From Vitrella brassicaformis CCMP3155 (taxonomy: Eukaryota > Protista > Chromerida), in the NCBI GenBank assembly GCA_001179505.1, contig CDMY01000611.1:1-42980 (forward strand): a stretch of DNA of 42,980 nt. The letters are read 5' to 3'. Numbering within the stretch: the first letter of the stretch is position 1; each line of letters opens with the position of its first letter. Positions 22,961 through 42,980 of this stretch are shown in pieces. The notes beneath the pieces are model-generated. The model had not been told where the DNA came from, ran no database searches, and worked only from the letters and a program-made list of their open reading frames with translations. The translations under genes were made by a program, and so were the position numbers.

Positions 22961-23008
22961 GATGCTTAGGGAATTCACACCTCCCTACACACAAGCAGGC
23001 ACACAAAA

Positions 23009-23212
23009 GGCAGCGGTTTCAGGAAATACCCTAAGCGGCGTGACGGCTTGATCCCATGTCTGTCCATCTCAACATGCAACATGCAACATGCGCCCCAACA
23101 TGCAACACGCAGCACGCAAAGGGCAGAAGCAGCAAACAGGTGGATATGCAATGCGCTGCGAACGACGGCAACATACGAGCAGGCACGTAACGTTGCACGC
23201 ACGCCATCCCAG
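23009..23212 (+). repeat. ~200-bp dispersed repeat, copy 1
   Basis: Aligns by eye with the reverse complement of 32966-33150 (ggcagcggtttc..accctaRg.ggc..acggc.tg.tcccatgt.tgtcca..(aacatgc)n..gggcagaagcag..gcgctgcga..ggcaRcatac). Confidence 0.7.
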
Positions 23213-23336
23213 CGTGGTATATAGCAAAAGCAAAATAATCATTACAAAAATTTACAAGCAAAAGCAAAATAACATATGGAGAAATGATAATATAGTATTA
23301 CCAGAGCGTATTGATTTAGATTTGTTTATATAACTA

Positions 23337-23897
23337 ATGGTACTAAATCAAGAAAAAGAGAAACATTAAAACATCTCTACTACCAATCGGGTTTCAATAA
23401 TATAAAGAATCAAAAAGTAAAGATAAAACTATAAGTGGATCTGATGTGAAAGAATTTATTGAAAACAAAGCATTTATCAGAGAATGCAGAAAATAGAAAT
23501 AAAATATAATTCATATATTCCTCCTGCTCCTCATTTTAATTATGAGGCAGATTTAGTCGATTATTCAAAATTCAGTCGATATGATGAAGGATATAAATAT
23601 ATCTTAAATGTTATAGACACATTTGTGAAGAAAGTTAGTAGTGCTGGACTTAAAACTAAAAGAGCAAATGAGGTATGATTCTATAAATGAATACAACAAT
23701 ACTAAACATTCAACTATCGAAATGAAACCTGATGAAGTTAATGATGAGAATGAAAGATTAGTATTATGGACATTAAAAGTGGAATATAAAAGGATTACAA
23801 CCCTTGAAAGTTGGAAATAAAGTTAAATTCAGAATACAGAAATCAAGTTAAATTCAGAATACAGGAATCAAAATTCGATAAAGGGTATCTACCATAA
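23337..23897 (+). pseudogene. Polinton/Maverick-type retroviral-like (rve) integrase relic in an AT-rich island
   Basis: MVLNQEKEKTLKHLYYQSG../SGSDVKEFI../YEADLVDYSKFSRYDEGYKYILNVIDTFVKK..LKTK../EYNNTKHSTIEMKPDEVNDENERLV../LKVGNKV..KFDKGYLP*. This matches the Polinton integrase pattern (xADLVD..GYKYILxxIDxFSK; YNNTxHSTIxMKP; FKVGDxVR..FxKGYLPNW). The centre is deleted, there are several frameshifts, and there is a 25-bp tandem duplication at 23820-23869. Confidence 0.85.
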
Positions 23898-23909
23898 TTG
23901 ATAGCAAAA

Positions 23910-23926
23910 TATTATGTATGAGATTG
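23910..23926 (+). repeat. Target-site duplication, left copy (tattatgtatgagattg)
   Basis: Identical 17-mer at 27478-27494, with a third copy at 29103-29119 inside the tandem duplication. Confidence 0.9.
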
Positions 23927-26900
23927 TGTGTGACATACGTTAACTCATAGCGCAACGGCAGGCAGAGTCTGTCGGTCTCTCATGAAAATATAAATGAACC
24001 GCATCAACATCGACCAACGCTCAATCATGCGACAAACATGCCAGCACCATCCTCAGCGCCCGCCTGGCGTATCTTCTAGCGGCGCCACCCACCACGCACA
24101 CACATACTCGCACTACGCGCTAACGCAACAGACAGACGAGCACCAACCCACCCCATCACCTGGTCATACCACTTCTCTGCCCACGCAGCTTTGATGCGCA
24201 GCTTCTCAACTAGGCGGCTGAAAAAACCATTAGCGTCTCTGCCTTACACACCATTCACCGTGACGCACAAGGGGGTGAAGTGGATGGACTTGTCCTTGCA
24301 CACACGACTATGATGGGCCTTTTTGGCCTTGTTACTGAGGATGGAGGCGGTAGATTGCGTGCGATAAGACGGTGCGTCAGCGTTTGTCACGCATAAGTCG
24401 AACGACACGTCCTTCTGCCTCTCCCACACCCCTCTCACTGTCCGTCCGCACCCCCTTCTCCCCCTCCTCAGGCTCCACAATCACCACCTCCTTCGTGACC
24501 GCCGACTCGCCCCAAACCTTGGCAGACAGATCGCACAGCACGTCCACCACGTCGTTGTACCGCCGAATTACCAACCCACCCACCCCACGGTTGAGGGCGT
24601 GGTCGAGCGAGTATGCAGCCCCGCAGCCGTCGCAGTGGGTGGGCATCTTGGGAGGCTCATAGGCGTACCGAATGGCCATGGTCGCGATCGTCAGGCGTCA
24701 GGTCGGTGTGGTCCTCTGCGTCAGGCCGGCAAGTCACCCACCCGGCCGTCTTGGCCTTGATCGCCTGATGGACCGCCCGTCGTCTCTCTGCGGGCAGCTG
24801 CTGGAGGCCGTCCTTGAAGCGCTCCTTGGCTGCCTCATCTGTCGCCCGCCGCTACTCCTTGACCGCTTGCTGTATCTCGGTGTGGTGCTGGAAGGGGTTG
24901 AATGGAGGGCCGTCGGGTGGGTTGCCGTTTTGAATGGTGGACACCAGCAGGGAGGTGCCCTTGGTGGATGTCTCGTATACCGCCGCTACTCGCTTTGTCG
25001 AGTCCCTCACCCTCATCCCCTTATGACGCGCAGGCAGCATCGTCAGCTGGGCCTTAGTAGCGGTCACCGCATGGTTGGAGAGCTGGATGAGGTAGTGGGT
25101 GAGGGCATCTCGCAGCGACTCGAATGTCGCCCGCTCCTCAGGCATCACCCGCATGAAGAAATCCCACTCGGCCTGCAGAGACGTTGTGAGTGCTGTGTGG
25201 GCTGCCTGCGGGTACTTGGCCGCTGCGTCCGCTATCCGGTTGACACATCGCTGCCACTCCTGCACCCTCTCAGTGGCGTAGGCTCGCTTGCCCTTCGCGG
25301 TCCTTACAAATCCTCCCATATATCGAGCACCACTCACAATCTCCACGTCGGTATCGCCAAACACCTCCCGCGCCCGATCCTTGCAACCTGCCCGCACCAC
25401 CAGCTTGCTCTTCTTGTCGTTGGAGTGATAGCCCCTCAGTGGCCCTCTCCGCTGCAGCTCATCCCATCAGTCGCGCACCGGCTGAAGGTCTCCCACCTTG
25501 GCGGAGTCGTCGGCAAACCACGCCTGAGAACCCTCCTCTGCTTGCCGCTTCATCTCCCACACGAGCGAAAGGGTGGCCACAGAGTAGAAGAGGGAAGCCA
25601 AGGGGTCGCCTTGTGTGGTCCCTTCTCGACTTCACAGCAGCGCGAGTTGGTCGCGCATGTAGAGGGCCGCATGGCCGCGATAGGTATTAAACAGGAAGCG
25701 TGAGCACCGCAGCCACAAAATGCGGACATTCCATATTGCGGCAGGGCGATTCATTGTATTGTAGGCGTTCATCGTATCCACCAGGATCGCACACTTTACG
25801 CCACTCGAGTCGAACTCGCCGGATACCGCATGAATGGCACCCTTCACGCCCCCCTTGAGCCCGGCGCATAGCTGGTCTGCACCACATACAATCTCCGCAT
25901 CCACCCCGACCGCCTTGGCTATCGCCTTGCCCATGATGCGCATCAGGACCTCCTTGATCCCGATGGGCCGCACACTTGGTTGCTTGTCCAGACCGATAAG
26001 CCGACATGCATGCAGGGCCTGCAGCCGCTCCTAGGGCACGTCCTCGTTGGCGATGTGTGAGGCCATGGCCGCTAACTCACTGCGCAGCTCCGCACTTGTC
26101 GCGCCGCCCTTGAGAAGGAGAGTCTTTCACACAGATGACTCGGCACCAACAGGGCCGGCGCCTCCCCTTGTTGCCCGTGCCGCCCGCTCGATGTGGTTGG
26201 CGGTGATCTCGACCTGGGTGAGGGGAGGGAGGGGCCGGTCGAGGAAGCAGGACGGGTCAGGGTCACTCTGGTTGGAGTACTTCGACTCGAGGACCTCCCG
26301 AATGGTGCGGCCCGCAGGGTCGGCCTCAGCCAGATCGTTGGAGTTCAGCGCGCCTCGCCCTCCCCACTCGGTCAGGAACCGGACGGCCTGCTTGACCTTG
26401 CCCTTGTCGATCAGGCGACGGAATTGACGCAGCGTGGCCTCGTTGGCGTCGTCCTTGCCAACAGGCCTGGTGGCCAGAAGGGCGTTGTTCCGCTCAGCCT
26501 CCTGCACGAGCTGCTCGAAGTCGCCCTTCTCCCATTGGTCCATCCGCCGCTCCACCGTCTTGGCGATGTCCTTGCTGCCAGTGACATCTGGCGCCCGATA
26601 GAGATTCGTGCACGCGCAGATGAGGATGCGCTTACTCGCCAGCTGCTCCTCACGCCACCGACGAGCCTCGGTGGCGAGCAGTCGGGCCAGCCGCTTCGTC
26701 GAAGCACCCGGTGGATCCCAAAGGCACCCTCGCAACGGGCCGAGGCGGGCGTGCCAGCGCTGCCAGTCGGTGTTTATGAGGCCGCTCTGCTGATTGAAGT
26801 CGGTGGCTCCGAAGGCCTCGTGCATCTTCTCTCGGACGAATGAAGACGTCGGAGGGCCAGCAGGGGGAGCAAGGGGTATGCCGGGAGGCGGGCGGTGGGG

Positions 26901-27477
26901 AGTCTCGACCGCATTGCAGAGGCAAGCGTAGCAGATGCCCTTGCTCGAGGACGCCGGGCGGATGTGGCAGCTGGCATACTGGGGAGCGACATACGATGCG
27001 GATCCGCCTCGTAGCGAAGACTCATCCGAGTGGAAGCAACGAGGATGAATGGAGGGGGAGTTCGAATCCTCGGCGGTACAGTTATTGTCCTCGGGCTCTC
27101 GATTCTCGCATATGCCTAGGTCACAGGAATGGCAGTTGGTGCACTTCTTGCCCTTCTCCAAGCAAGGGCAGCCCCGCTCTTTCCCCTTCCTCTTGCATCT
27201 CGATCCAGTGGTCTTGTTCCGGTTCTTGTTGCATGAGCAACACCGCACAGGACCAGCGGCTGGCTGCAAGGGCGGGGCATCGTCTCCCGGCACTGCAGAG
27301 ACGCCCTCTTGAGACGGCGGGGGCGGATGGGCTGAGTCTGTTGAGACTGGGGTCGATTCTGCACTCATTCTCCAGAGCTGCTCGAGCTGGATATGATGCT
27401 GGCAGGTGTGGCCCGAGCAGCCGTCATAGTAAGGAGAAAAAGGGCCTCAGGCCCTGCGAGCTCAGACAAGCAATCAT
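23927..27477 (-). mobile_element. Full-length CRE-like non-LTR retrotransposon (RT + restriction-like endonuclease), decayed
   Basis: ATG at 27368 and an N-terminal Cys cluster. RT motifs: GAGPxG, LDKQ..VRPIGIKEVLMRI, DTMNAYN, GTTQGDPL (~25600-25625), WFADD (~25507-25521). Zn knuckle HCDGC..DHAL and RLE RTD..RGVW..FDLCVTNADAPSY..FTPLCVT. Several in-frame stops and frameshifts; flanked by a 17-bp direct repeat. Confidence 0.92.
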
Positions 27478-28041: not shown

Positions 28042-28285
28042 CGTCAGAATGCTCTCGCATGTTGCCATTGATATTGTACTCTGGTAGCGTTTCCACTATG
28101 TGGAAAGGCCGGTAAGAGCCTTCCCGAATCAGTTGAATAGCTGAGGATCAACTGGGCGGTAAGTCGTAGAGTCAAGAGTGCTTTCACTTCACTGAGACGG
28201 ACAGGTCACACATTAGTGATATACTGGTGTCTATCCATAGGATGCATCGTCAGGCTACATGGACACAGATCTGCTTCGGTGACGG
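28042..28285 (-). mobile_element. Truncated copy of the solo LTR created by the tandem duplication
   Basis: Near-identical to 29668-29911 and cut at the duplication junction. Confidence 0.8.
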
Positions 28286-29376
28286 GACGAGCCTCGGTGG
28301 CGAGCAGTCGGGCCAGCCGCTTCGTCGAAGCACCCGGTGGATCCCAAAGGCATCTCGCAACGGGCCGAGGCGGGCGTGCCAGCGCTGCCAGTCGGTGTTT
28401 ATGAGGCCGCTCTGCTGATTGAAGTCGGTAGCTCCGAAGGCCTCGTGCATCTTCTCTCGGACGAATGAAGACGTCGGAGGGCCAGCAGGGGGAGCAAGGG
28501 GTATACCGGGAGGCGGGCGGTGGGGAGTCTCGACCGCATTGCAGAGGCAAGCGTAGCAGATGCCCTTGCTCGAGGACGCCGGGCGGATGTGGCAGCTGGC
28601 ATACTGGGGAGCGACATACGATGCGGATCCGCCTCGTAGCGAAGACTCATCCGAGTGGAAGCAACGAGGATGAATGGAGGGGGAGTTCGAATCCTCGGCG
28701 GTACAGTTATTGTCCTCGGGCTCTCGATTCTCGCATATGCCTAGGTCACAGGAATGGCAGTTGGTGCACTTCTTGCCCTTCTCCAAGCAAGGGCAGCCCC
28801 GCTCTTTCCCCTTCCTCTTGCATCTCGATCCAGTGGTCTTGTTCCGGTTCTTGTTGCATGAGCAACACCGCACAGGACCAGCGGCTGGCTGCAAGGGCGG
28901 GGCATCGTCTCCCGGCACTGCAGAGACGCCCTCTTGAGACGGCGGGGGCGGATGGGCTGAGTCTGTTGAGACTGGGGTCGATTCTGCACTCATTCTCCAG
29001 AGCTGCTCGAGCTGGATATGATGCTGGCAGGTGTGGCCCGAGCAGCCGTCATAGTAAGGAGAAAAAGGGCCTCAGGCCCTGCGAGCTCAGACAAGCAATC
29101 ATTATTATGTATGAGATTGCAATGAATGAAAAGATACTTCAAAATTCAAAAAAGCAAAACGGAAATGTGGATTCACAGGTGTTTGTATCGAGTGTATAGA
29201 AAACAAATGTAAAAACTCAACTTAAACTGTAGTCTTGCATTTTTTCTTTGCCACCCCCGTCCCCCTTCTACATGCCTGTCCACACCCTCGTCCTTTTAAA
29301 CGTTTATCACATTAGGACTTTCACAGGGGTTTCCACTTCTTTTCACGCTTTTTACCCTATCCCTTTCATAATCTCC

Positions 29377-33150: not shown

Positions 33151-35235
33151 GCTAAATATCATAAAATCGATCGAGACCAGACCTTCTCCCTCCATTCTAA
33201 CGGCCCCTGCGCATGTGTAGCATGCGTGAGTTTCCGTTTGCGTGTGCATGACAGACAATGGGACTACGCCAGCGGCCACATAAGAGATCTCACTGCCTGC
33301 CCCATATATCTGCCTATATATGTCTGCCTATGTGTCTATATATATGTGTCTGGCTGGCTCTGTTTTGGATGCACACGTACCTGTCTCTCTCCCTGTAGGT
33401 GAAGTCCCTGCAGTAGTTGGAGCAGACCATGTGGCTTCAGCCCTCTGTCTTGGAAACCACCGCGCCGCAATGAGGACACACATTCATCCGGTGATGCTGA
33501 ATAACTCGGTGTATGAATCACACACAACACACAAAGATACACACACACACACACACACACATCATGCAGCGATCTATCTCTTGGTATCGGAGGAATGCCC
33601 TTTCGCCCCGTGGGTTTTCGGCCGCAAGTTTCTGCTGAATTTGCTGACTGCATGCATGTAGGTAAGTGCACCTCGAACGCGATGGCCTGATTGTCTGTAT
33701 GTCTGTGTGTCTGTATGTGTTGGACGGGCTTCATCTTCTCTGCGCTCGCTCGACGTAAGCCCCTTTGAGTACACACACCTCTCCCTTCATTCGTTATGTC
33801 GTTCGACGAGCCCGTAAGACCTGCCACACAAGGTGTCTCGCCTATGCCTTCGCGCATGGGCAGGGGCTCCCAGCCCCCGATGAGCCTTCGGGGGTTTAGA
33901 GCGGGAAGTCACCGACGACTATTGATTCGATCCAGCTTGCAATGAATGCGAAGTCAGTTTGTGAGATGGTGCAGTGTGTTGAATGATGTATCTCACTTTT
34001 CGTGTCATCTATAGCTGCAGACCTCTGTAACCTCATGGCCAATGCGATGCAGCCGTCAAATGATGAAGCGGCATGAAGAGTGTGTGAAACTTGTTGTGCC
34101 TCAGAATAAATCAATGGTAACGAATTCATTGTCAAAGACACAATTTATCAAACAGAATAAGCCCGAGCGCGCCACGTCGAAAGCATTATCGCCCACACTC
34201 ACATACAAGGTCTGTCTGACACCGTAGGTGACATGACACAGTACAGAGGCGAGGCGCTGATTTCAGAGTGAAGAGGGCAGAAGGATGAGAGAAGAAAGGC
34301 GAAGCGACCCTTTTCCCAAAAAGGCATTTCACGATTTGGACGCTTTCAGGCTCTCCATCTGACAGGCTTCTTAATCACCCCCATCAACGGTACACCGGGT
34401 GATTTGCATGCGGTCAAAGTGTGTATGTACCTTCCTCCAAGAAGACGATCACGGATGAGAAATAGAGGGTGTAGTCCTTCAAAAAGACGGTCACGGATGA
34501 CCAACAGAGGGGGCAGTAAAGTTCAAAAGTAAGAATCCCAATCACGCTCGTACGCGGCATGGAAACGACAGTGGATGCAGAATTGGAGGCCGGTGGAAGA
34601 GAGAAACAGCAAAGCACTCTCTTGCTATGCTATTAGCGCAACCGTACTCTCAGGAGCAGCACCCTTGTGAGTCGCAATCGACTTCAGACCGCCAGAATAT
34701 CTAGAAGCACTCAGTGATGCATATGCTCGACCATATGATGTCGAGAGCAAAAGAAAAGCGAACACGTCTGGATGACGAAGAGAAAGCCGCAAAGAAAAGA
34801 CAGTTCTCGTCATTCGTATCTTTCATACAGTTCTTATACTCCTTATCGCGTAGAAGACCAATCATGCCTACACGCCGAGTGTCTACATACGTACAAGTCG
34901 GAACGACGAAGGCACATGCAGTGAGACGAAAAAGGAACTTTCTGTATGAACCAAGAAATCATGAAAACAACGTAGCCCCATACCACCATGCGCACTATGC
35001 GATAGAATGAGGGAGGTCTCAAATTGACAGTAAGAAAGTACATAAGAAAGCGGCACTGCAAAAAGGGGCGACTATGAAGCCTCCTTGCCAGACCTGCCTC
35101 CCTCTTGTGGAGATGTTGAAAGAGCACGATTTGTCCTGCACTTCCGGTTCGGACGCCTGAAGGACAACAGCAAGTAGCAACCGTCGGGAACGACTGGGCA
35201 CTATGTCGGCAGACCACTGCTCTGTGTTCGTTTAC

Positions 35236-35502
35236 CTATTGTGCTGCAGTATCAGACTGCTCAATGCCGGTCACAGCACCAGCAAGTTCACGGGGGACTT
35301 CTGCATCACCCTTGTAAGCCACTGCTCCTTTAGGCATGTCCTCTGGGGTCCGCAAGAGTTCACGACGCGTAGGGCGGCAGCAGGCACCCGATGGTAGGCA
35401 GTAAGGAGGAGAACATCCGGAACCAGGGCAAGGGACACACTGTTGCACCGACGGCTGAAGGACGGCCAAAAGAATGACGAGAGCCAAGACGAGCTTCATC
35501 AT
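35236..35502 (-). CDS. Intact 88-aa secreted peptide precursor with a six-Cys defensin-like core and C-terminal pro-region
   Basis: MMKLVLALVILLAVLQPSVQQ-CVPCPGSGCSPPYCLPSGACC-RPTRRELLRTPEDMPKG..EQSDTAAQ*. Single exon, ATG at 35502/35499, TAG at 35238-35236. Confidence 0.7.
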   Translation of the reverse strand: MMKLVLALVILLAVLQPSVQQCVPCPGSGCSPPYCLPSGACCRPTRRELLRTPEDMPKGAVAYKGDAEVPRELAGAVTGIEQSDTAAQ

Positions 35503-35794
35503 GCTTGCGGGGTGGATGAAGAGGCAATTCAAAGCTGGCAATAGACACGAAGGAGTTCGTCGATCCGCAGGGAGAAGAAAGTTCTCGCCCTCCCGTTTTT
35601 CCTTCGCAGATCAGCCTTTTGAACGCTGAGATCTCTGGGTTCGGCCGCTGAACGGACCTCTCTTGTACCTCATCTCTAAGGGCAAGGACGTGCCGCTGAC
35701 AGTTCGAGGTTCCCGGCTGCTCTCCTTCCGGACGATAGATCTGACTTCTCCCGCCCATCCGAGCGGTCCTGCCCTGCTCCAGGACCCGAGCGGG

Positions 35795-37581
35795 ATGGCG
35801 ACAAGAGTGCCGCCCGCCTATCCGCCACCAGGAGATCCTCCCGACTCGGCCATGCAGCCATTCTCGCAACCGGAGGACTCCCAGTCAGCCCCTCGCGCTC
35901 GTCACCTCGTGCTCGTCACTCGTCACCAGTCCTTCCTTTCTGCCTGGACCTCCCACGGCGTGGATGACTCCCGCGCGCAGACCTTCCACGTGGCGTTCAT
36001 GATGATTCGGTGGTCGGGAGGAGTGGAAGCGGCGCGCACGGCGCTCGACAACCTCACCCGGCAGGCATTCGGCGACCCCGCCATGCGGGAGGCGGTGAAG
36101 GCGGCCTCCTCGCCGCTACTGATTGGCATCGCCGAGTCGCTCGAGTACTCATCCGACCCCGGGTCGTCGCCGAAGCGAAAACGGCGGTGCCAACGGGGCA
36201 AGAAGGGTCGCCCGATCTGGTCGGGGGGCGGCTTCGATGCGTCCTAGGGCTTTCCAGGGCGCCGGCCGCCCAATCAGCGGCGGCGGTGCCCTCCTACCCC
36301 GCCGCCACCGCCATCGCCACACCCTCAGCAGGGGAGTCATCGGACGAGTCCCTCGACGAGTCGCCGGTGGAGGCCGCCCCTCTGGAACGCCTGCCCACCC
36401 CCAGTGCCCTCTTCCGCGACCAATGGAGACAGCGGAAACGCCTCCGGAAGTGCTTCGGCTCTCCTTCCCCCCCACCGGACCTCCGCCGGCCGCTCACTCG
36501 CAGCTCGAACGGCTCCCGCACTGCCCTCTCCCGCCGCGCATGCGGTCCTCCCGGGAGTCCTCACCCGCGCCCATCCCGTCGCCTCCAGTCTCGTCCTCCG
36601 AGCACACCTGCGCAAACTACAGCCCAACTCGACAGCGGCCGGCGTGCGGAGCCGGCTGCGGCAGGGGGCTCGTTCATCGGCCACGGCCCTGCTGCGGCAG
36701 CCGCTGGACCGGCCAACGCGGCTAGTGCCGGATCTGGGCACGCAGGGATCCGATGGCAACGATAGGGATGCGGACATGGACGGATGGGGGGACGGGGAAG
36801 AGGATGAGGACGAAAACGGCAGCCGGTACCCCCTGCCTGTGGCCGCCCTCCAGCAGCTCGCGACTTGAGACATCAGCCATTCATGCAAGGGCAGATCCCC
36901 ACGATCAACAAATGGGTCGCCCGTCGGGAGTTCGCTATTCGCGCCGCCCGCGCCAACGCTGTAAGATGGTGAGAGGCAATGTAATCTTCCGGCACACGGA
37001 GGTGCTGGACGTCCTGTGCGACATCTCTGCTCAAGCATTCGGTGCCTCGGCAGTGAGGAAGGAGGTCGTGCTTATGGAGGGAGACGGGGAATGGCAAAGG
37101 GGCTGAAGGTGGACATGGTAGTGAGGGGTGTGTGGGAGTGGTAGAAGGATGCGTCGTTTGACCTTTGCGTGATCAACGCTGACGCGTCTTCCTACCGTCT
37201 CACCTCAATGACCTCCGTCATCCACAAGAACGCGCGAGACAAGAAGACAAAGCACCCGCGTGTCTGCGAGGATCGGTCCATCCAGTTCACCCTTCCTGTC
37301 GTCACCGTGGATGGAGTGTGGGAGAGAAAAGGCAGAGCACTTTTTCGATCGTGTGGTTGATACATTGCATTCCGAGTCTGGCTGGCATGAGAAGTCGCAT
37401 GGGCAAGTGTTGGGATGAGTGCGTGCTCGTGTGTCTGTTGCGCTGGCGCGTGGTGTGAGTGTTTGTATGGGTGGGGCATGTTTGTTGCTGATTAGTTGTT
37501 GACTGGTTGGTCTATGCAAGCTTTTCGATGGACTGATGGACAATTCGTGCCATCGCACTATGCGTTGATACCTGTCTCTCA
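35795..37581 (+). mobile_element. Internally deleted CRE-like non-LTR element (5' region joined to the RLE end, RT missing); 5' boundary uncertain
   Basis: GNVIFRHTEVLDVLCDISAQAFGASAVRKEVVL..LKVDMVVRGVWE..DASFDLCVINADASSY..VCEDRSIQFTLPVVTVDGV (~36970-37330) is homologous to the RLE at 24250-24570 (-). The 3' terminal motif matches that element. No RT motifs between 35795 and 36970. Confidence 0.75.
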
Positions 37582-40840: not shown

Positions 40841-42810
40841 TATGCAGGTATACATAGGGCTCCTGAGGGTGACGAAGGAACCTTTTGTTGAGTAGTTAGT
40901 TGTAGAGAGTGACATTTCATACGCGCGGGGCTTCCTTGAGGCCATACAATGCCTTCCGTAGACGAACAACATGGCCGGGCTTCTCATATCCAGGTGGGCA
41001 CCGCATAAAGACAGGCTTGTCCAGCGGGGCGTTGAGGAATGCTGTGTTGATGTCCATCTGATGGATCTCTAGGTTAAATTGATTCGCCAGGGCAAACGCT
41101 GATCGAACAATGTGGTAGGAAAGCATGGAAGAAAACACGTCATCCACTTGGTTGCCATCTTGTTCGAATCCTTGCGCGACAATGCGGGCCTTGTACTTGT
41201 CAGGCTTGAGGGCAAATACCCATCTGCATAAGATGATTTTGGTCGTTGCGGCTTTCTCCGGCACGTACTCAAACACTCTCAGGTCTTCAATCGACTTCAT
41301 CTCACGATCCATGGCTTCTTTCCATTAGTCTGCTGCTGTTGACTTCATCGCTTGGGTATAGGTTTTAAGTATGGTTGGCTGGAATAGCTGTAGGAGTGAT
41401 GGGTCTTCTGTCATCTCGTCATCTTCATTCACAAAGAGCAGGTCAGGATGATCGAAGAAGTGGTCTTCATAGATGCGTCCAAAGATGCGTCGCTCATCTT
41501 TTGTTCTTGTCGTTCTTGTTTGTTGCTTATCAGTGTCTTCCTCTTTTTCTTGACCATTGCCTTCCTCAATGACCTTCATGTCATTATGGGCGTCATTTGT
41601 CTCCTGATAATGATGTGGTTCGTTGTTGTCATCGTGTATGTCCTCGATTGCTGGTAAGGGCTCACTCACAGACGCCTCGGGCCGTTGTGAATAGATAAGA
41701 TCGATTGCTGGTGGTGCTCGTGGCTTCTTCTCTTGTCCAGGCAGTATCGCCTCATCAAACAGCACATCGCGTGACAGCACCAATTGCCGTGTGTGCGGCA
41801 GGTACACGAGATAGCCGTCCTTGGTCGCTGGGTCATACCCAAGTAAGATGCCGATCTGCGTGCGAGAGTTTATCTTGCCAATCGTCTCTTTCCTCTGGTT
41901 GATGTGTGCCTTGCAGCCGAAGGTGCGAATGTGGCCGACATCGGGTGGATAGCCGATGAAGAGCTCATGTGGTGTCTTCATTCCCTCGTTGGCTGCGGTT
42001 GGCGTGCGGTTCTTGATGTACGTCGCTGTGGCCGTCGCATAACACCAATAAGATGCGGGTAAGCCGGCAGTGAACAACAGTGCACGCGCCATAGCACAAA
42101 TCACACCAATGGCTCGCCCAGCCACTCCATTCTGGGACTGATGATATGGCAAACTCCTCTCTTGTCTTATCTGGTTTGTCTCGCAGAACTCTTTCCACTG
42201 GCCCTTGATGAGCTTCGCCCCTCCATCTGTCCTCACTGCCTTAGGCATGCGGACTGCAGTGCAGTACTGGATGAATGCAGGAGGGGCATTCCGATTTCTT
42301 CTTGAGGAAGTAAGTCTGCAGCCACCTTGATGCATCGTCGACCACCACCATCAGGTACTTGTATCCTCTCTCGCTTGGCTGTTTGATCTGTGACAGGTCG
42401 ACGTGGATGAGATCACTAGGGTATTGGTGTCAATACGCACCTCCTGCATACGGCAGTTGCTTCATTTTGGCCTTCGGACACACTTCACACTTGGTCTTCT
42501 CGTCGTCACTGTTGTTCTTCTTTGCTGTTGGTGCGTGTTTTGTCACTTCAGGTAGTTTCTTGATGTATCCATCATTGACGTGGGCAAATCGCTGATGCAG
42601 TCGCTCTTGTGTGAGGACTTCTGCGACTAACACGTCTGTTGTCATCACATTCGTCGGTTCTTCATTCTTATCGTCCACCGATGATGTGTGCGGCTGCTCC
42701 ATGACGTCAGCCACTCGCTCATCGGTCGCATTCGAGCAGTCGGACGGGTCCTTGTCGATGTTGAGGTACCAGAATCGCCCTTCACGCATCAATGGGTACA
42801 TATCTCCTCT
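40840..42810 (-). mobile_element. Ty1/Copia pol fragment (GAG-pre-integrase, integrase, N-terminal half of RT), inverted relative to the flanking gag and PPT
   Basis: LHQRFAH..CEVCPKAK; LIHVDL..YLMVVVDDASR; VRTDGG..QNGVAGR; RTFGC; SRDVLFDE; WKKAMDREM; CRWVF..KARIVAQGFEQ; HQMDINTAFLN; LRKALYGLKEAPR. Integrase precedes RT, as in Copia. Confidence 0.93.
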
Positions 42811-42814
42811 CTTT

Positions 42815-42980
42815 AGGGGGGGGGAAACTGTCATTAACCGTAACACTCGTCTGTGTGTCCGTGATACTCATACAAATACAGTCCCATCAGCACGCAGACT
42901 CAAACAGGCTCAAGGGGAGGAGGGATCAATCCCCGCCCCATCAGCACACCCCAGTCCCGCAAAGCCTCCCCTCCCTCCCC
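42815..42980 (+). mobile_element. Polypurine tract (42815-42827) plus the start of an LTR (from 42829), truncated by the window end
   Basis: A-G9-AAA-C then TGTCATTAAC; beyond TGTCA it does not resemble the 39924 LTR. Confidence 0.6.

Follow-up and report, generated by a model that had tools for sequence, protein, structure and literature searches.

An 88-codon reading frame with a signal-like N-terminus and a six-cysteine core

Does a short, uninterrupted reading frame on a repeat-rich scaffold of Vitrella brassicaformis belong to a gene for a small secreted cysteine-rich protein, or has it merely stayed open by chance? Chromerids are the closest photosynthetic relatives of the apicomplexan parasites, and accounts of what they secrete have been confined to large multi-domain proteins (PMC4501334). 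The frame lies in the complete scaffold C611, the 42,980 nt stretch of DNA that was analysed as a whole and is referred to below as the window. From the letters alone, a sequence-only reading had proposed an intact precursor at 35236–35502, composed of a signal-like N-terminus, a six-Cys core, a dibasic site and an acidic tail. This layout was confirmed on the minus strand, where 88 uninterrupted codons run from the ATG at 35502 to the last sense codon at 35239 and are closed by a stop codon at 35236–35238.

The first 21 residues (35440–35502, minus strand), consisting of MMK, a hydrophobic stretch of 12 residues and QPSVQQ, have the composition of a signal peptide, which would be cleaved after Q21. 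Their best 10-residue Kyte-Doolittle mean, 3.59, was the highest among the 215 ATG-initiated ORFs of at least 60 aa in the window, and AlphaFold2 placed a helix at residues 2–14 of the 88-aa protein. The core occupies residues 22–42 (35377–35439, minus strand) with the spacing C-x2-C-x4-C-x4-C-x5-CC, and 19 of its 21 residues are invariant across the two subfamilies described below. The dibasic RR (residues 46–47; 35362–35367, minus strand) stands in the context RPTRR followed by EL, and the alignment places it within an invariant block, TRREL, making it a candidate proprotein-convertase site. The remaining 41 residues (48–88; 35239–35361, minus strand) form a Cys-free acidic tail (pI 4.3, charge −4.2) that is predicted to be disordered. 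The predicted mature part thus comprises 67 aa with six Cys. No second membrane span, GPI signal or KDEL/HDEL motif was found in the 88-aa protein, the end of the tail being polar and free of any hydrophobic stretch.

To place this layout among the other frames of the window, the same 215 ORFs were compared for cysteine clusters. Six or more Cys within 21 residues occurred in 16 of them, and most six-Cys clusters among the window ORFs derive from TG/CA-rich simple repeats. The combination of a signal-like hydrophobic N-terminus with a six-Cys cluster was found in this ORF only (1/215), and none of the random Markov sequences of the same composition combined such an N-terminus with a Cys cluster.

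Two other destinations were considered. PEXEL/TEXEL-like export motifs take the form RxLxE/Q/D or RRL, and a motif of this kind at RRELL was rejected since its residues misfit both forms. In targeting to complex red plastids, an aromatic or Leu residue typically follows signal cleavage; plastid targeting is unlikely here, because the residue that would follow cleavage is Cys, neither aromatic nor Leu.

The gene is transcribed and spliced in the sense of the reading frame

Four public runs were compared over positions 33800–36000 of the window, two of them with transcriptome-sized contig sets (X1 and X2) and two with genome-sized sets (X3 and X4). X1 and X2 each contained a contig of 193 nt in which 35156 is connected directly with 35236; the skipped sequence has the ends CT..AC on the plus strand, which are GT..AG on the minus strand. 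Coverage in X1 and X2 was exactly zero over the skipped segment 35157–35235, whereas X3 and X4 read through it; coverage was likewise zero to the left of 34082 (X1) or 34172 (X2), where X3 and X4 cover the flanks. The spliced contig showed zero mismatches to the C611 copy vs. at least 18 to any paralogue. The C611 copy itself is therefore transcribed and spliced, and in the sense of the ORF, since this copy-specific contig carries a minus-strand GT..AG intron. The doubts that the sequence-only reading had attached to its own proposal, that the frame might have no transcript or might lie antisense to a transposon segment, are thereby answered by the contigs in X1 and X2 and by the strand of the intron. 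Expression of C740-like and C778-like copies was likewise evident from variant contigs.

Read from its 5′ side, the gene begins with a conserved segment of ~76 nt (35503–35578, minus strand), a leader or proximal promoter at which homology among the copies starts. Its identity between subfamilies is 0.71 vs. 0.39 further upstream, and in family members it is free of ATGs, and position −3 relative to the start codon is a purine. The 88-codon ORF starts at the first ATG downstream of this leader; the spliced mRNA contains no longer ORF, the next-longest having 66 aa and no conservation. Its stop codon, TAG, forms the last three bases of exon 1 in a position conserved among the copies, and the 79-nt GT..AG intron (35157–35235, minus strand), defined by the X1 and X2 contigs, follows directly. 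Exon 2 (34082–35156, minus strand) is a 3′UTR of ~1 kb delimited by the two ends of RNA coverage given above; its end was mapped in the C611 copy only, where the repeated unit reaches its limit at the same place (~34173). Upstream, a contig in X1 continues for more than 700 nt beyond the ATG, through a neighbouring two-copy segment.

Several smaller features of the transcribed region were recorded. Between subfamilies the 79-nt 3′UTR intron has an identity of 0.77, little below the 0.83 of the CDS. Inside the 3′UTR lies a 42-nt tandem duplication of 81% identity (34433–34516), and the distal 3′UTR at 34101–34436 is 96% identical to C870:10946-11280 (L013), which adjoins no family member; this stretch is another low-copy repeat that overlaps the end of the gene. 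At position 35469 the assembly has A, but all four runs, DNA and RNA alike, have G. The change is synonymous in the ORF (Leu, TTG to CTG), the other subfamily-A copies carry C on the minus strand, and the discrepancy likely reflects an assembly error or a strain difference.

Eight loci in the Vitrella brassicaformis genome

The genome of V. brassicaformis CCMP3155 (72,700,666 bp in 1064 scaffolds) was searched with protein and DNA queries. Eight loci on seven scaffolds were found, namely C611, which carries the 88-codon ORF described here, C929, C740, two loci in opposite orientation on C778 (C778a and C778b), C1032, C1001 and C622. Queries with the Cys core alone or with the subfamily-B protein returned the same eight loci and added none. 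The copies are 69–93% identical, have a reading frame of 88–90 codons and fall into two subfamilies, A being distinguished by SPPYC and CCRPTRR and B by VPEYC and CCDPN(N)TRR. All six Cys and the RR are kept in 8/8 copies. Homologues that keep the Cys spacing, which the sequence-only reading had expected of a real peptide family, thus exist as paralogues at these loci within Vitrella only, and they conserve the RR as well.

The stop position is kept in all seven copies that could be aligned across the 3′ end, C929 having TAA. The CDS differs by only two indels, of 3 and 6 nt, both in frame and both separating the subfamilies. The intron is exactly 79 nt with GT..AG ends and no indel in 7/7 aligned copies (C611, C929, C740, C778 ×2, C1001 and C622); GT(A/G)A directly follows the stop codon in the aligned copies, and 79 nt on there is a polypyrimidine tract ending in CAG. 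Individual copies carry lesions or variants: the start codon is lost in C778a, codon 1 of C740 is changed from ATG to ATT while its second Met is unaffected, an assembly gap interrupts C1032, and the tails of C740 and C778b each contain one additional Cys, the seventh.

The subfamily-A copies share a unit of ~1.4 kb, corresponding to 34173–35578 of the window. Between A and B only ~500 bp are homologous, running from the 76-nt leader through the ORF and the intron to ~60 nt into exon 2, and outside the shared unit the flanking contexts of the copies are unrelated. Only about four independent lineages are represented among the eight copies (C611; C929/C740; C778a/C778b/C1032; C1001/C622), so any statistic drawn from them is limited accordingly.

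Searches for relatives in sequence and structure databases

A word-based search of 5.8 billion clusters matched only two proteins, P0001 and P0002. P0001 is the C740 copy itself (C740:22542-22805, L003), annotated as a 147-aa ‘unnamed protein product’ from CCMP3155. Its public model adds ~60 upstream residues by way of a predicted intron, and this N-terminal extension is probably a prediction artefact explained by the ATG-to-ATT mutation of C740. The second match, P0002, is a fragment of 83 aa from a JGI contig (L029; JGI 3300017297, Ga0186270_106881, 1590 nt), which is 99% identical to and collinear with the C778 copies. The contig retains the intron and was for that reason rejected as an independent spliced transcript; it may come from the transcriptome of another Vitrella strain, as unspliced RNA or DNA carry-over.

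An exhaustive profile search of 1.84 billion representative proteins gave four weak matches (P0003–P0006), none with the six-Cys module, and these were rejected as homologues, being tandem-repeat proteins that score by summing short stretches. A scan of JGI metagenome contigs produced 133 pattern matches, none of which was confirmed. Pfam-A hmmscan at E ≤ 10 assigned no family to the full protein or to the mature parts of six members, NCBIfam gave no match to the family protein, a PDB sequence profile search produced nothing above noise, its sole hit being a scorpion kappa-KTx (E = 9.8), and a search of the ESM Atlas by features yielded no relative. Therefore, no relative outside Vitrella was detectable in the databases searched (proteins, structures and JGI contigs). 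The exact products of five intact copies, C611 included, were absent from a 15-billion-protein collection, so the family is essentially unannotated; a product is on record for at most one of the eight loci, C740, which shows that gene prediction missed this class of protein.

Coding constraint and alternative explanations

Constraint on the reading frame was estimated from the paralogues. The Nei-Gojobori dN/dS was ~0.55 overall (A vs. B, dS 0.29 and dN 0.17), and dN was below dS in 20 of the 21 pairs. Within the core, dN/dS was 0 in subfamily A and 0.38 between subfamilies, vs. 0.6–0.7 in the tail; variable residues numbered 2 of 21 in the core vs. 18 of 27 in the distal tail. Two Cys codons have changed among the copies, both synonymously (TGC/TGT), and no Cys has been lost in any of the eight. 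Neither the codon-position bias (p=0.21) nor a Fisher test of synonymous and non-synonymous changes in core vs. tail (p=0.22) was significant, variable sites made up 25% of the CDS vs. 32% of the intron, and synonymous variants numbered 4 in 21 core codons vs. 18 in 48 tail codons. Under neutrality, all copies would remain open with a chance of ~0.03–0.10, before the in-frame indels are counted. The dN/dS among paralogues that the sequence-only reading had thought worth examining is thus below 1, lowest in the core, with no single constraint test reaching significance. Its argument that the frame stands intact among pseudogenes counts for less, because the copies are young and might by that neutral estimate have stayed open anyway. 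Together these values suggest that the family is young, its core constrained and its tail nearly free, the constraint being modest.

These data are probably best explained by a two-exon multigene family of eight loci, confined to V. brassicaformis, that encodes small six-Cys proteins predicted to be secreted. A rival origin is a transcribed low-copy repeat or lncRNA in which chance would have kept the 88 codons open, the youth of the copies would have spared them from decay, and the core would be conserved as DNA or RNA or by gene conversion rather than as protein. Such an origin would account for the weak overall constraint, for an intron nearly as conserved as the CDS and free of indels, for a synonymous rate that is also lower in the core than in the tail, for the neutral chance of an open frame given above, and for a gene that has no relatives anywhere searched and sits on small repeat-rich scaffolds. 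Against it, both CDS indels are multiples of three, the Cys-codon changes are synonymous and the stop position fixed, dN lies below dS in all pairs but one, and no other ORF of the window pairs a signal-like N-terminus with six clustered Cys. The homology between subfamilies (leader, ORF, intron and ~60 nt), moreover, centres on the ORF, and we consider the repeat or lncRNA origin unlikely.

It is very unlikely that the ORF is part of a larger protein, with an upstream exon spliced in frame and the hydrophobic stretch internal rather than a signal. P0001 is annotated in this way, with 147 aa for the C740 copy, the frame is open upstream of the ATG in all copies (124–309 codons), and RNA contigs extend upstream of the ATG. 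But the family homology ends 76 nt upstream of the ATG and the sequence farther upstream is unrelated between copies, the C611 copy has no in-frame upstream ATG within the open frame, and no upstream splice joint was present in the four runs. The C740 model is a poor guide in this respect, as the change of ATG to ATT forces the gene predictor upstream, and a downstream extension is excluded by a stop that lies in exon 1. We regard it as more improbable still that the ORF is a passenger of a small mobile element, the 1.4-kb unit being a non-autonomous transposon transcribed by chance. The unit does occur in unrelated contexts on seven scaffolds, other repeats abut both of its ends (that shared with C1037 from 35557 upward, that shared with C870 at 34101–34436), and a copia fragment lies 5.4 kb away; yet no terminal inverted or long terminal repeats were found at its boundaries and no transposase, RT or other mobile-element domain within it. 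Only eight copies exist, the limits of the unit coincide with those of the mRNA, and none of the copies has lost its spliceosomal intron, which shows that they did not arise as retroposed cDNAs.

Predicted structure and comparison with known cysteine-rich families

With the shallow family alignment, AlphaFold2 modelled the core at pLDDT 72–78 with only short beta-bridges; residues RREL formed a short helix, and the tail was disordered, at pLDDT below 50. Fold searches gave no match to the core with Foldseek against the PDB, none at Z ≥ 2 with VIA-align against 48,161 chains, and a best TM ≤ 0.35, nothing meaningful, in a shape search of the ESM Atlas. The structural comparison by which the sequence-only reading had hoped to place the peptide thus ended in a core of moderate confidence that matched no fold in these collections. 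The charge of the core is +0.7 in subfamily A (+2.7 with the RR) and about −2.3 in subfamily B, and the core is rich in Pro, Gly and Ser with few hydrophobic side chains.

The Cys spacing of beta-defensins is about C-x4-8-C-x3-5-C-x9-13-C-x4-7-CC, and their fold is a three-stranded beta-sheet tied by disulfides 1-5, 2-4 and 3-6. The Vitrella core has in common with beta-defensins and big defensins the Cys order C-C-C-C-CC, the terminal CC and secretion by a signal peptide, which is predicted here; however, its loops are far shorter (2, 4, 4, 5), and it is weakly charged rather than cationic and amphipathic. Membership of the beta-defensins accordingly fails on the Pfam profile (no match at E ≤ 10), on loop lengths outside the beta-defensin pattern and on cationic charge. 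No fold match was obtained either. The assignment as ‘defensin-like’ in the sequence-only reading is not supported as a statement of family, and the term is an analogy of Cys order only. The WR1/Lustrin cysteine-rich domain, which that reading had offered instead, was likewise dropped for want of a Pfam match at E ≤ 10; there is a loose likeness in Y-C ... G-x-CC, but WR1/Lustrin modules form arrays in large proteins, whereas Vitrella has a single module in 88 aa. Knottins (ICK) and conotoxins are marked by the framework C-C-CC-C-C with a 1-4, 2-5, 3-6 knot, or by a conserved conotoxin signal sequence; they were rejected because the framework here is C-C-C-C-CC, and no Pfam toxin family was matched.

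Class II plant defensins have an eight-Cys CS-alpha-beta fold and an acidic C-terminal propeptide. The layout of signal, Cys-rich peptide and acidic Cys-free C-terminal tail is alike, but the Vitrella core has six Cys in 21 residues and no homology to them, and the neutralisation of charge by the tail that applies to class II plant defensins is inapplicable to subfamily B. The broadest resemblance is to small secreted cysteine-rich proteins such as plant CRPs, fungal effectors and mollusc CRP-I (PMC4558851), with which the Vitrella proteins have in common a signal peptide (predicted here), a length below 100 aa, six Cys able to form three disulfides, a lineage-restricted multigene family, repeat-rich DNA and a pro-region bounded by a dibasic site. 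They differ from these groups in having no sequence or fold similarity to them and in carrying the pro-like tail at the C-terminus. Of the features that define this general kind, a predicted signal, small size, six invariant Cys and an mRNA are all present, and the conservation expected of the cleavage site in a dibasic prepropeptide is seen in the RR that is invariant in both subfamilies. As judged from the predicted protein, it is only this generic class of small secreted cysteine-rich proteins that the family fits.

Proposed processing and possible role

In the model that we favour, exon 1 supplies a short leader and the whole reading frame, the 79-nt intron directly follows the stop codon and exon 2 stays untranslated. 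The translated protein would enter the ER co-translationally by means of its cleavable signal peptide, and the 21-residue core would fold into a compact module held by three disulfides. The product may then leave the cell or reach the cell wall or a secretory organelle, destinations that are proposed because neither a membrane span nor a GPI signal or retention motif is present in the protein. A Kex2/furin-type convertase may cut at the RR and free a peptide of ~24–26 residues from the disordered acidic tail; given the invariance of TRREL, such dibasic processing is plausible, although we hold it only tentatively.

With regard to function, a ligand or a wall-associated binding module seems more probable than a membrane-active defensin of the cationic kind. 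An invariant, presumably rigid core joined to a variable disordered tail would better suit a ligand for binding or signalling, or a wall module. Membrane lysis by a cationic peptide is unlikely, given the acidic core of subfamily B, the small number of hydrophobic side chains in the core and the fact that the core is the conserved part. The antimicrobial or toxin role that the sequence-only reading had entertained appears weakened in the same way, as an invariant core with a variable tail is the reverse of what arms-race toxin precursors display. A bolder reading would have Vitrella make a new class of disulfide-knotted secreted peptides, their cystine framework being new and its loops very short (2-4-4-5, CC), released at the RR from an acidic propeptide and serving as extracellular signals or as allelopathic or antimicrobial agents in a coral-associated community, as part of a wider chromerid repertoire of Cys-rich peptides; we consider this rather doubtful.

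If the proteins are indeed secreted, a very small Cys-rich family would add a layer to what chromerids release or build into their walls, and peptide chemists would take an interest in the core if it proved to be a stable mini-fold with three disulfides and a new framework. Leaving function aside, what has been obtained is a well-supported orphan gene family, new as a family within a well-known general kind.

Scaffold context

The sequence-only reading had described the surroundings of the gene as a pseudogene graveyard, and this was verified only in part. A fragmented Ty1/copia-type retroelement lies at 40917–42846 on the minus strand, its Pfam domains distributed over separate ORFs: gag-pre-integrase at 42430–42846, an integrase SH3-like domain at 41325–42335 and RVT_2 at 40917–41312, the last covering only profile positions 11–128 of 244. 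For 19 of the other window ORFs that were scanned, Pfam gave no match. No telomeric repeats were found in the window.

The segment 35557–36700, upstream of the gene, has one other copy of 96% identity, on C1037:2976-4128 (L031). The C1037 copy is transcribed, as seen in X1 and X2 contigs, and its variants occur in all four runs, including an 8-nt insertion after 35593. A plus-strand ORF of 194 codons at 35663–36247 had no Pfam match. Further to the left, two minus-strand ORFs at 26127–27368 and 28250–28993 have the same first residues, at least 70 in number, and a CCSC...C-x-C cluster, again with no Pfam match, which suggests that they are two adjacent copies of one element. An AT-rich island at 23001–24000 has a GC content of 0.34, compared with 0.50–0.69 for the scaffold. 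Finally, the plus strand at ~20.5–21.1 kb and other TG/CA-rich stretches contain Cys-rich simple-repeat ORFs with patterns such as ECLCAHTC and LECVY, and ORFs of this kind are a source of false cysteine-rich-peptide calls in this genome.
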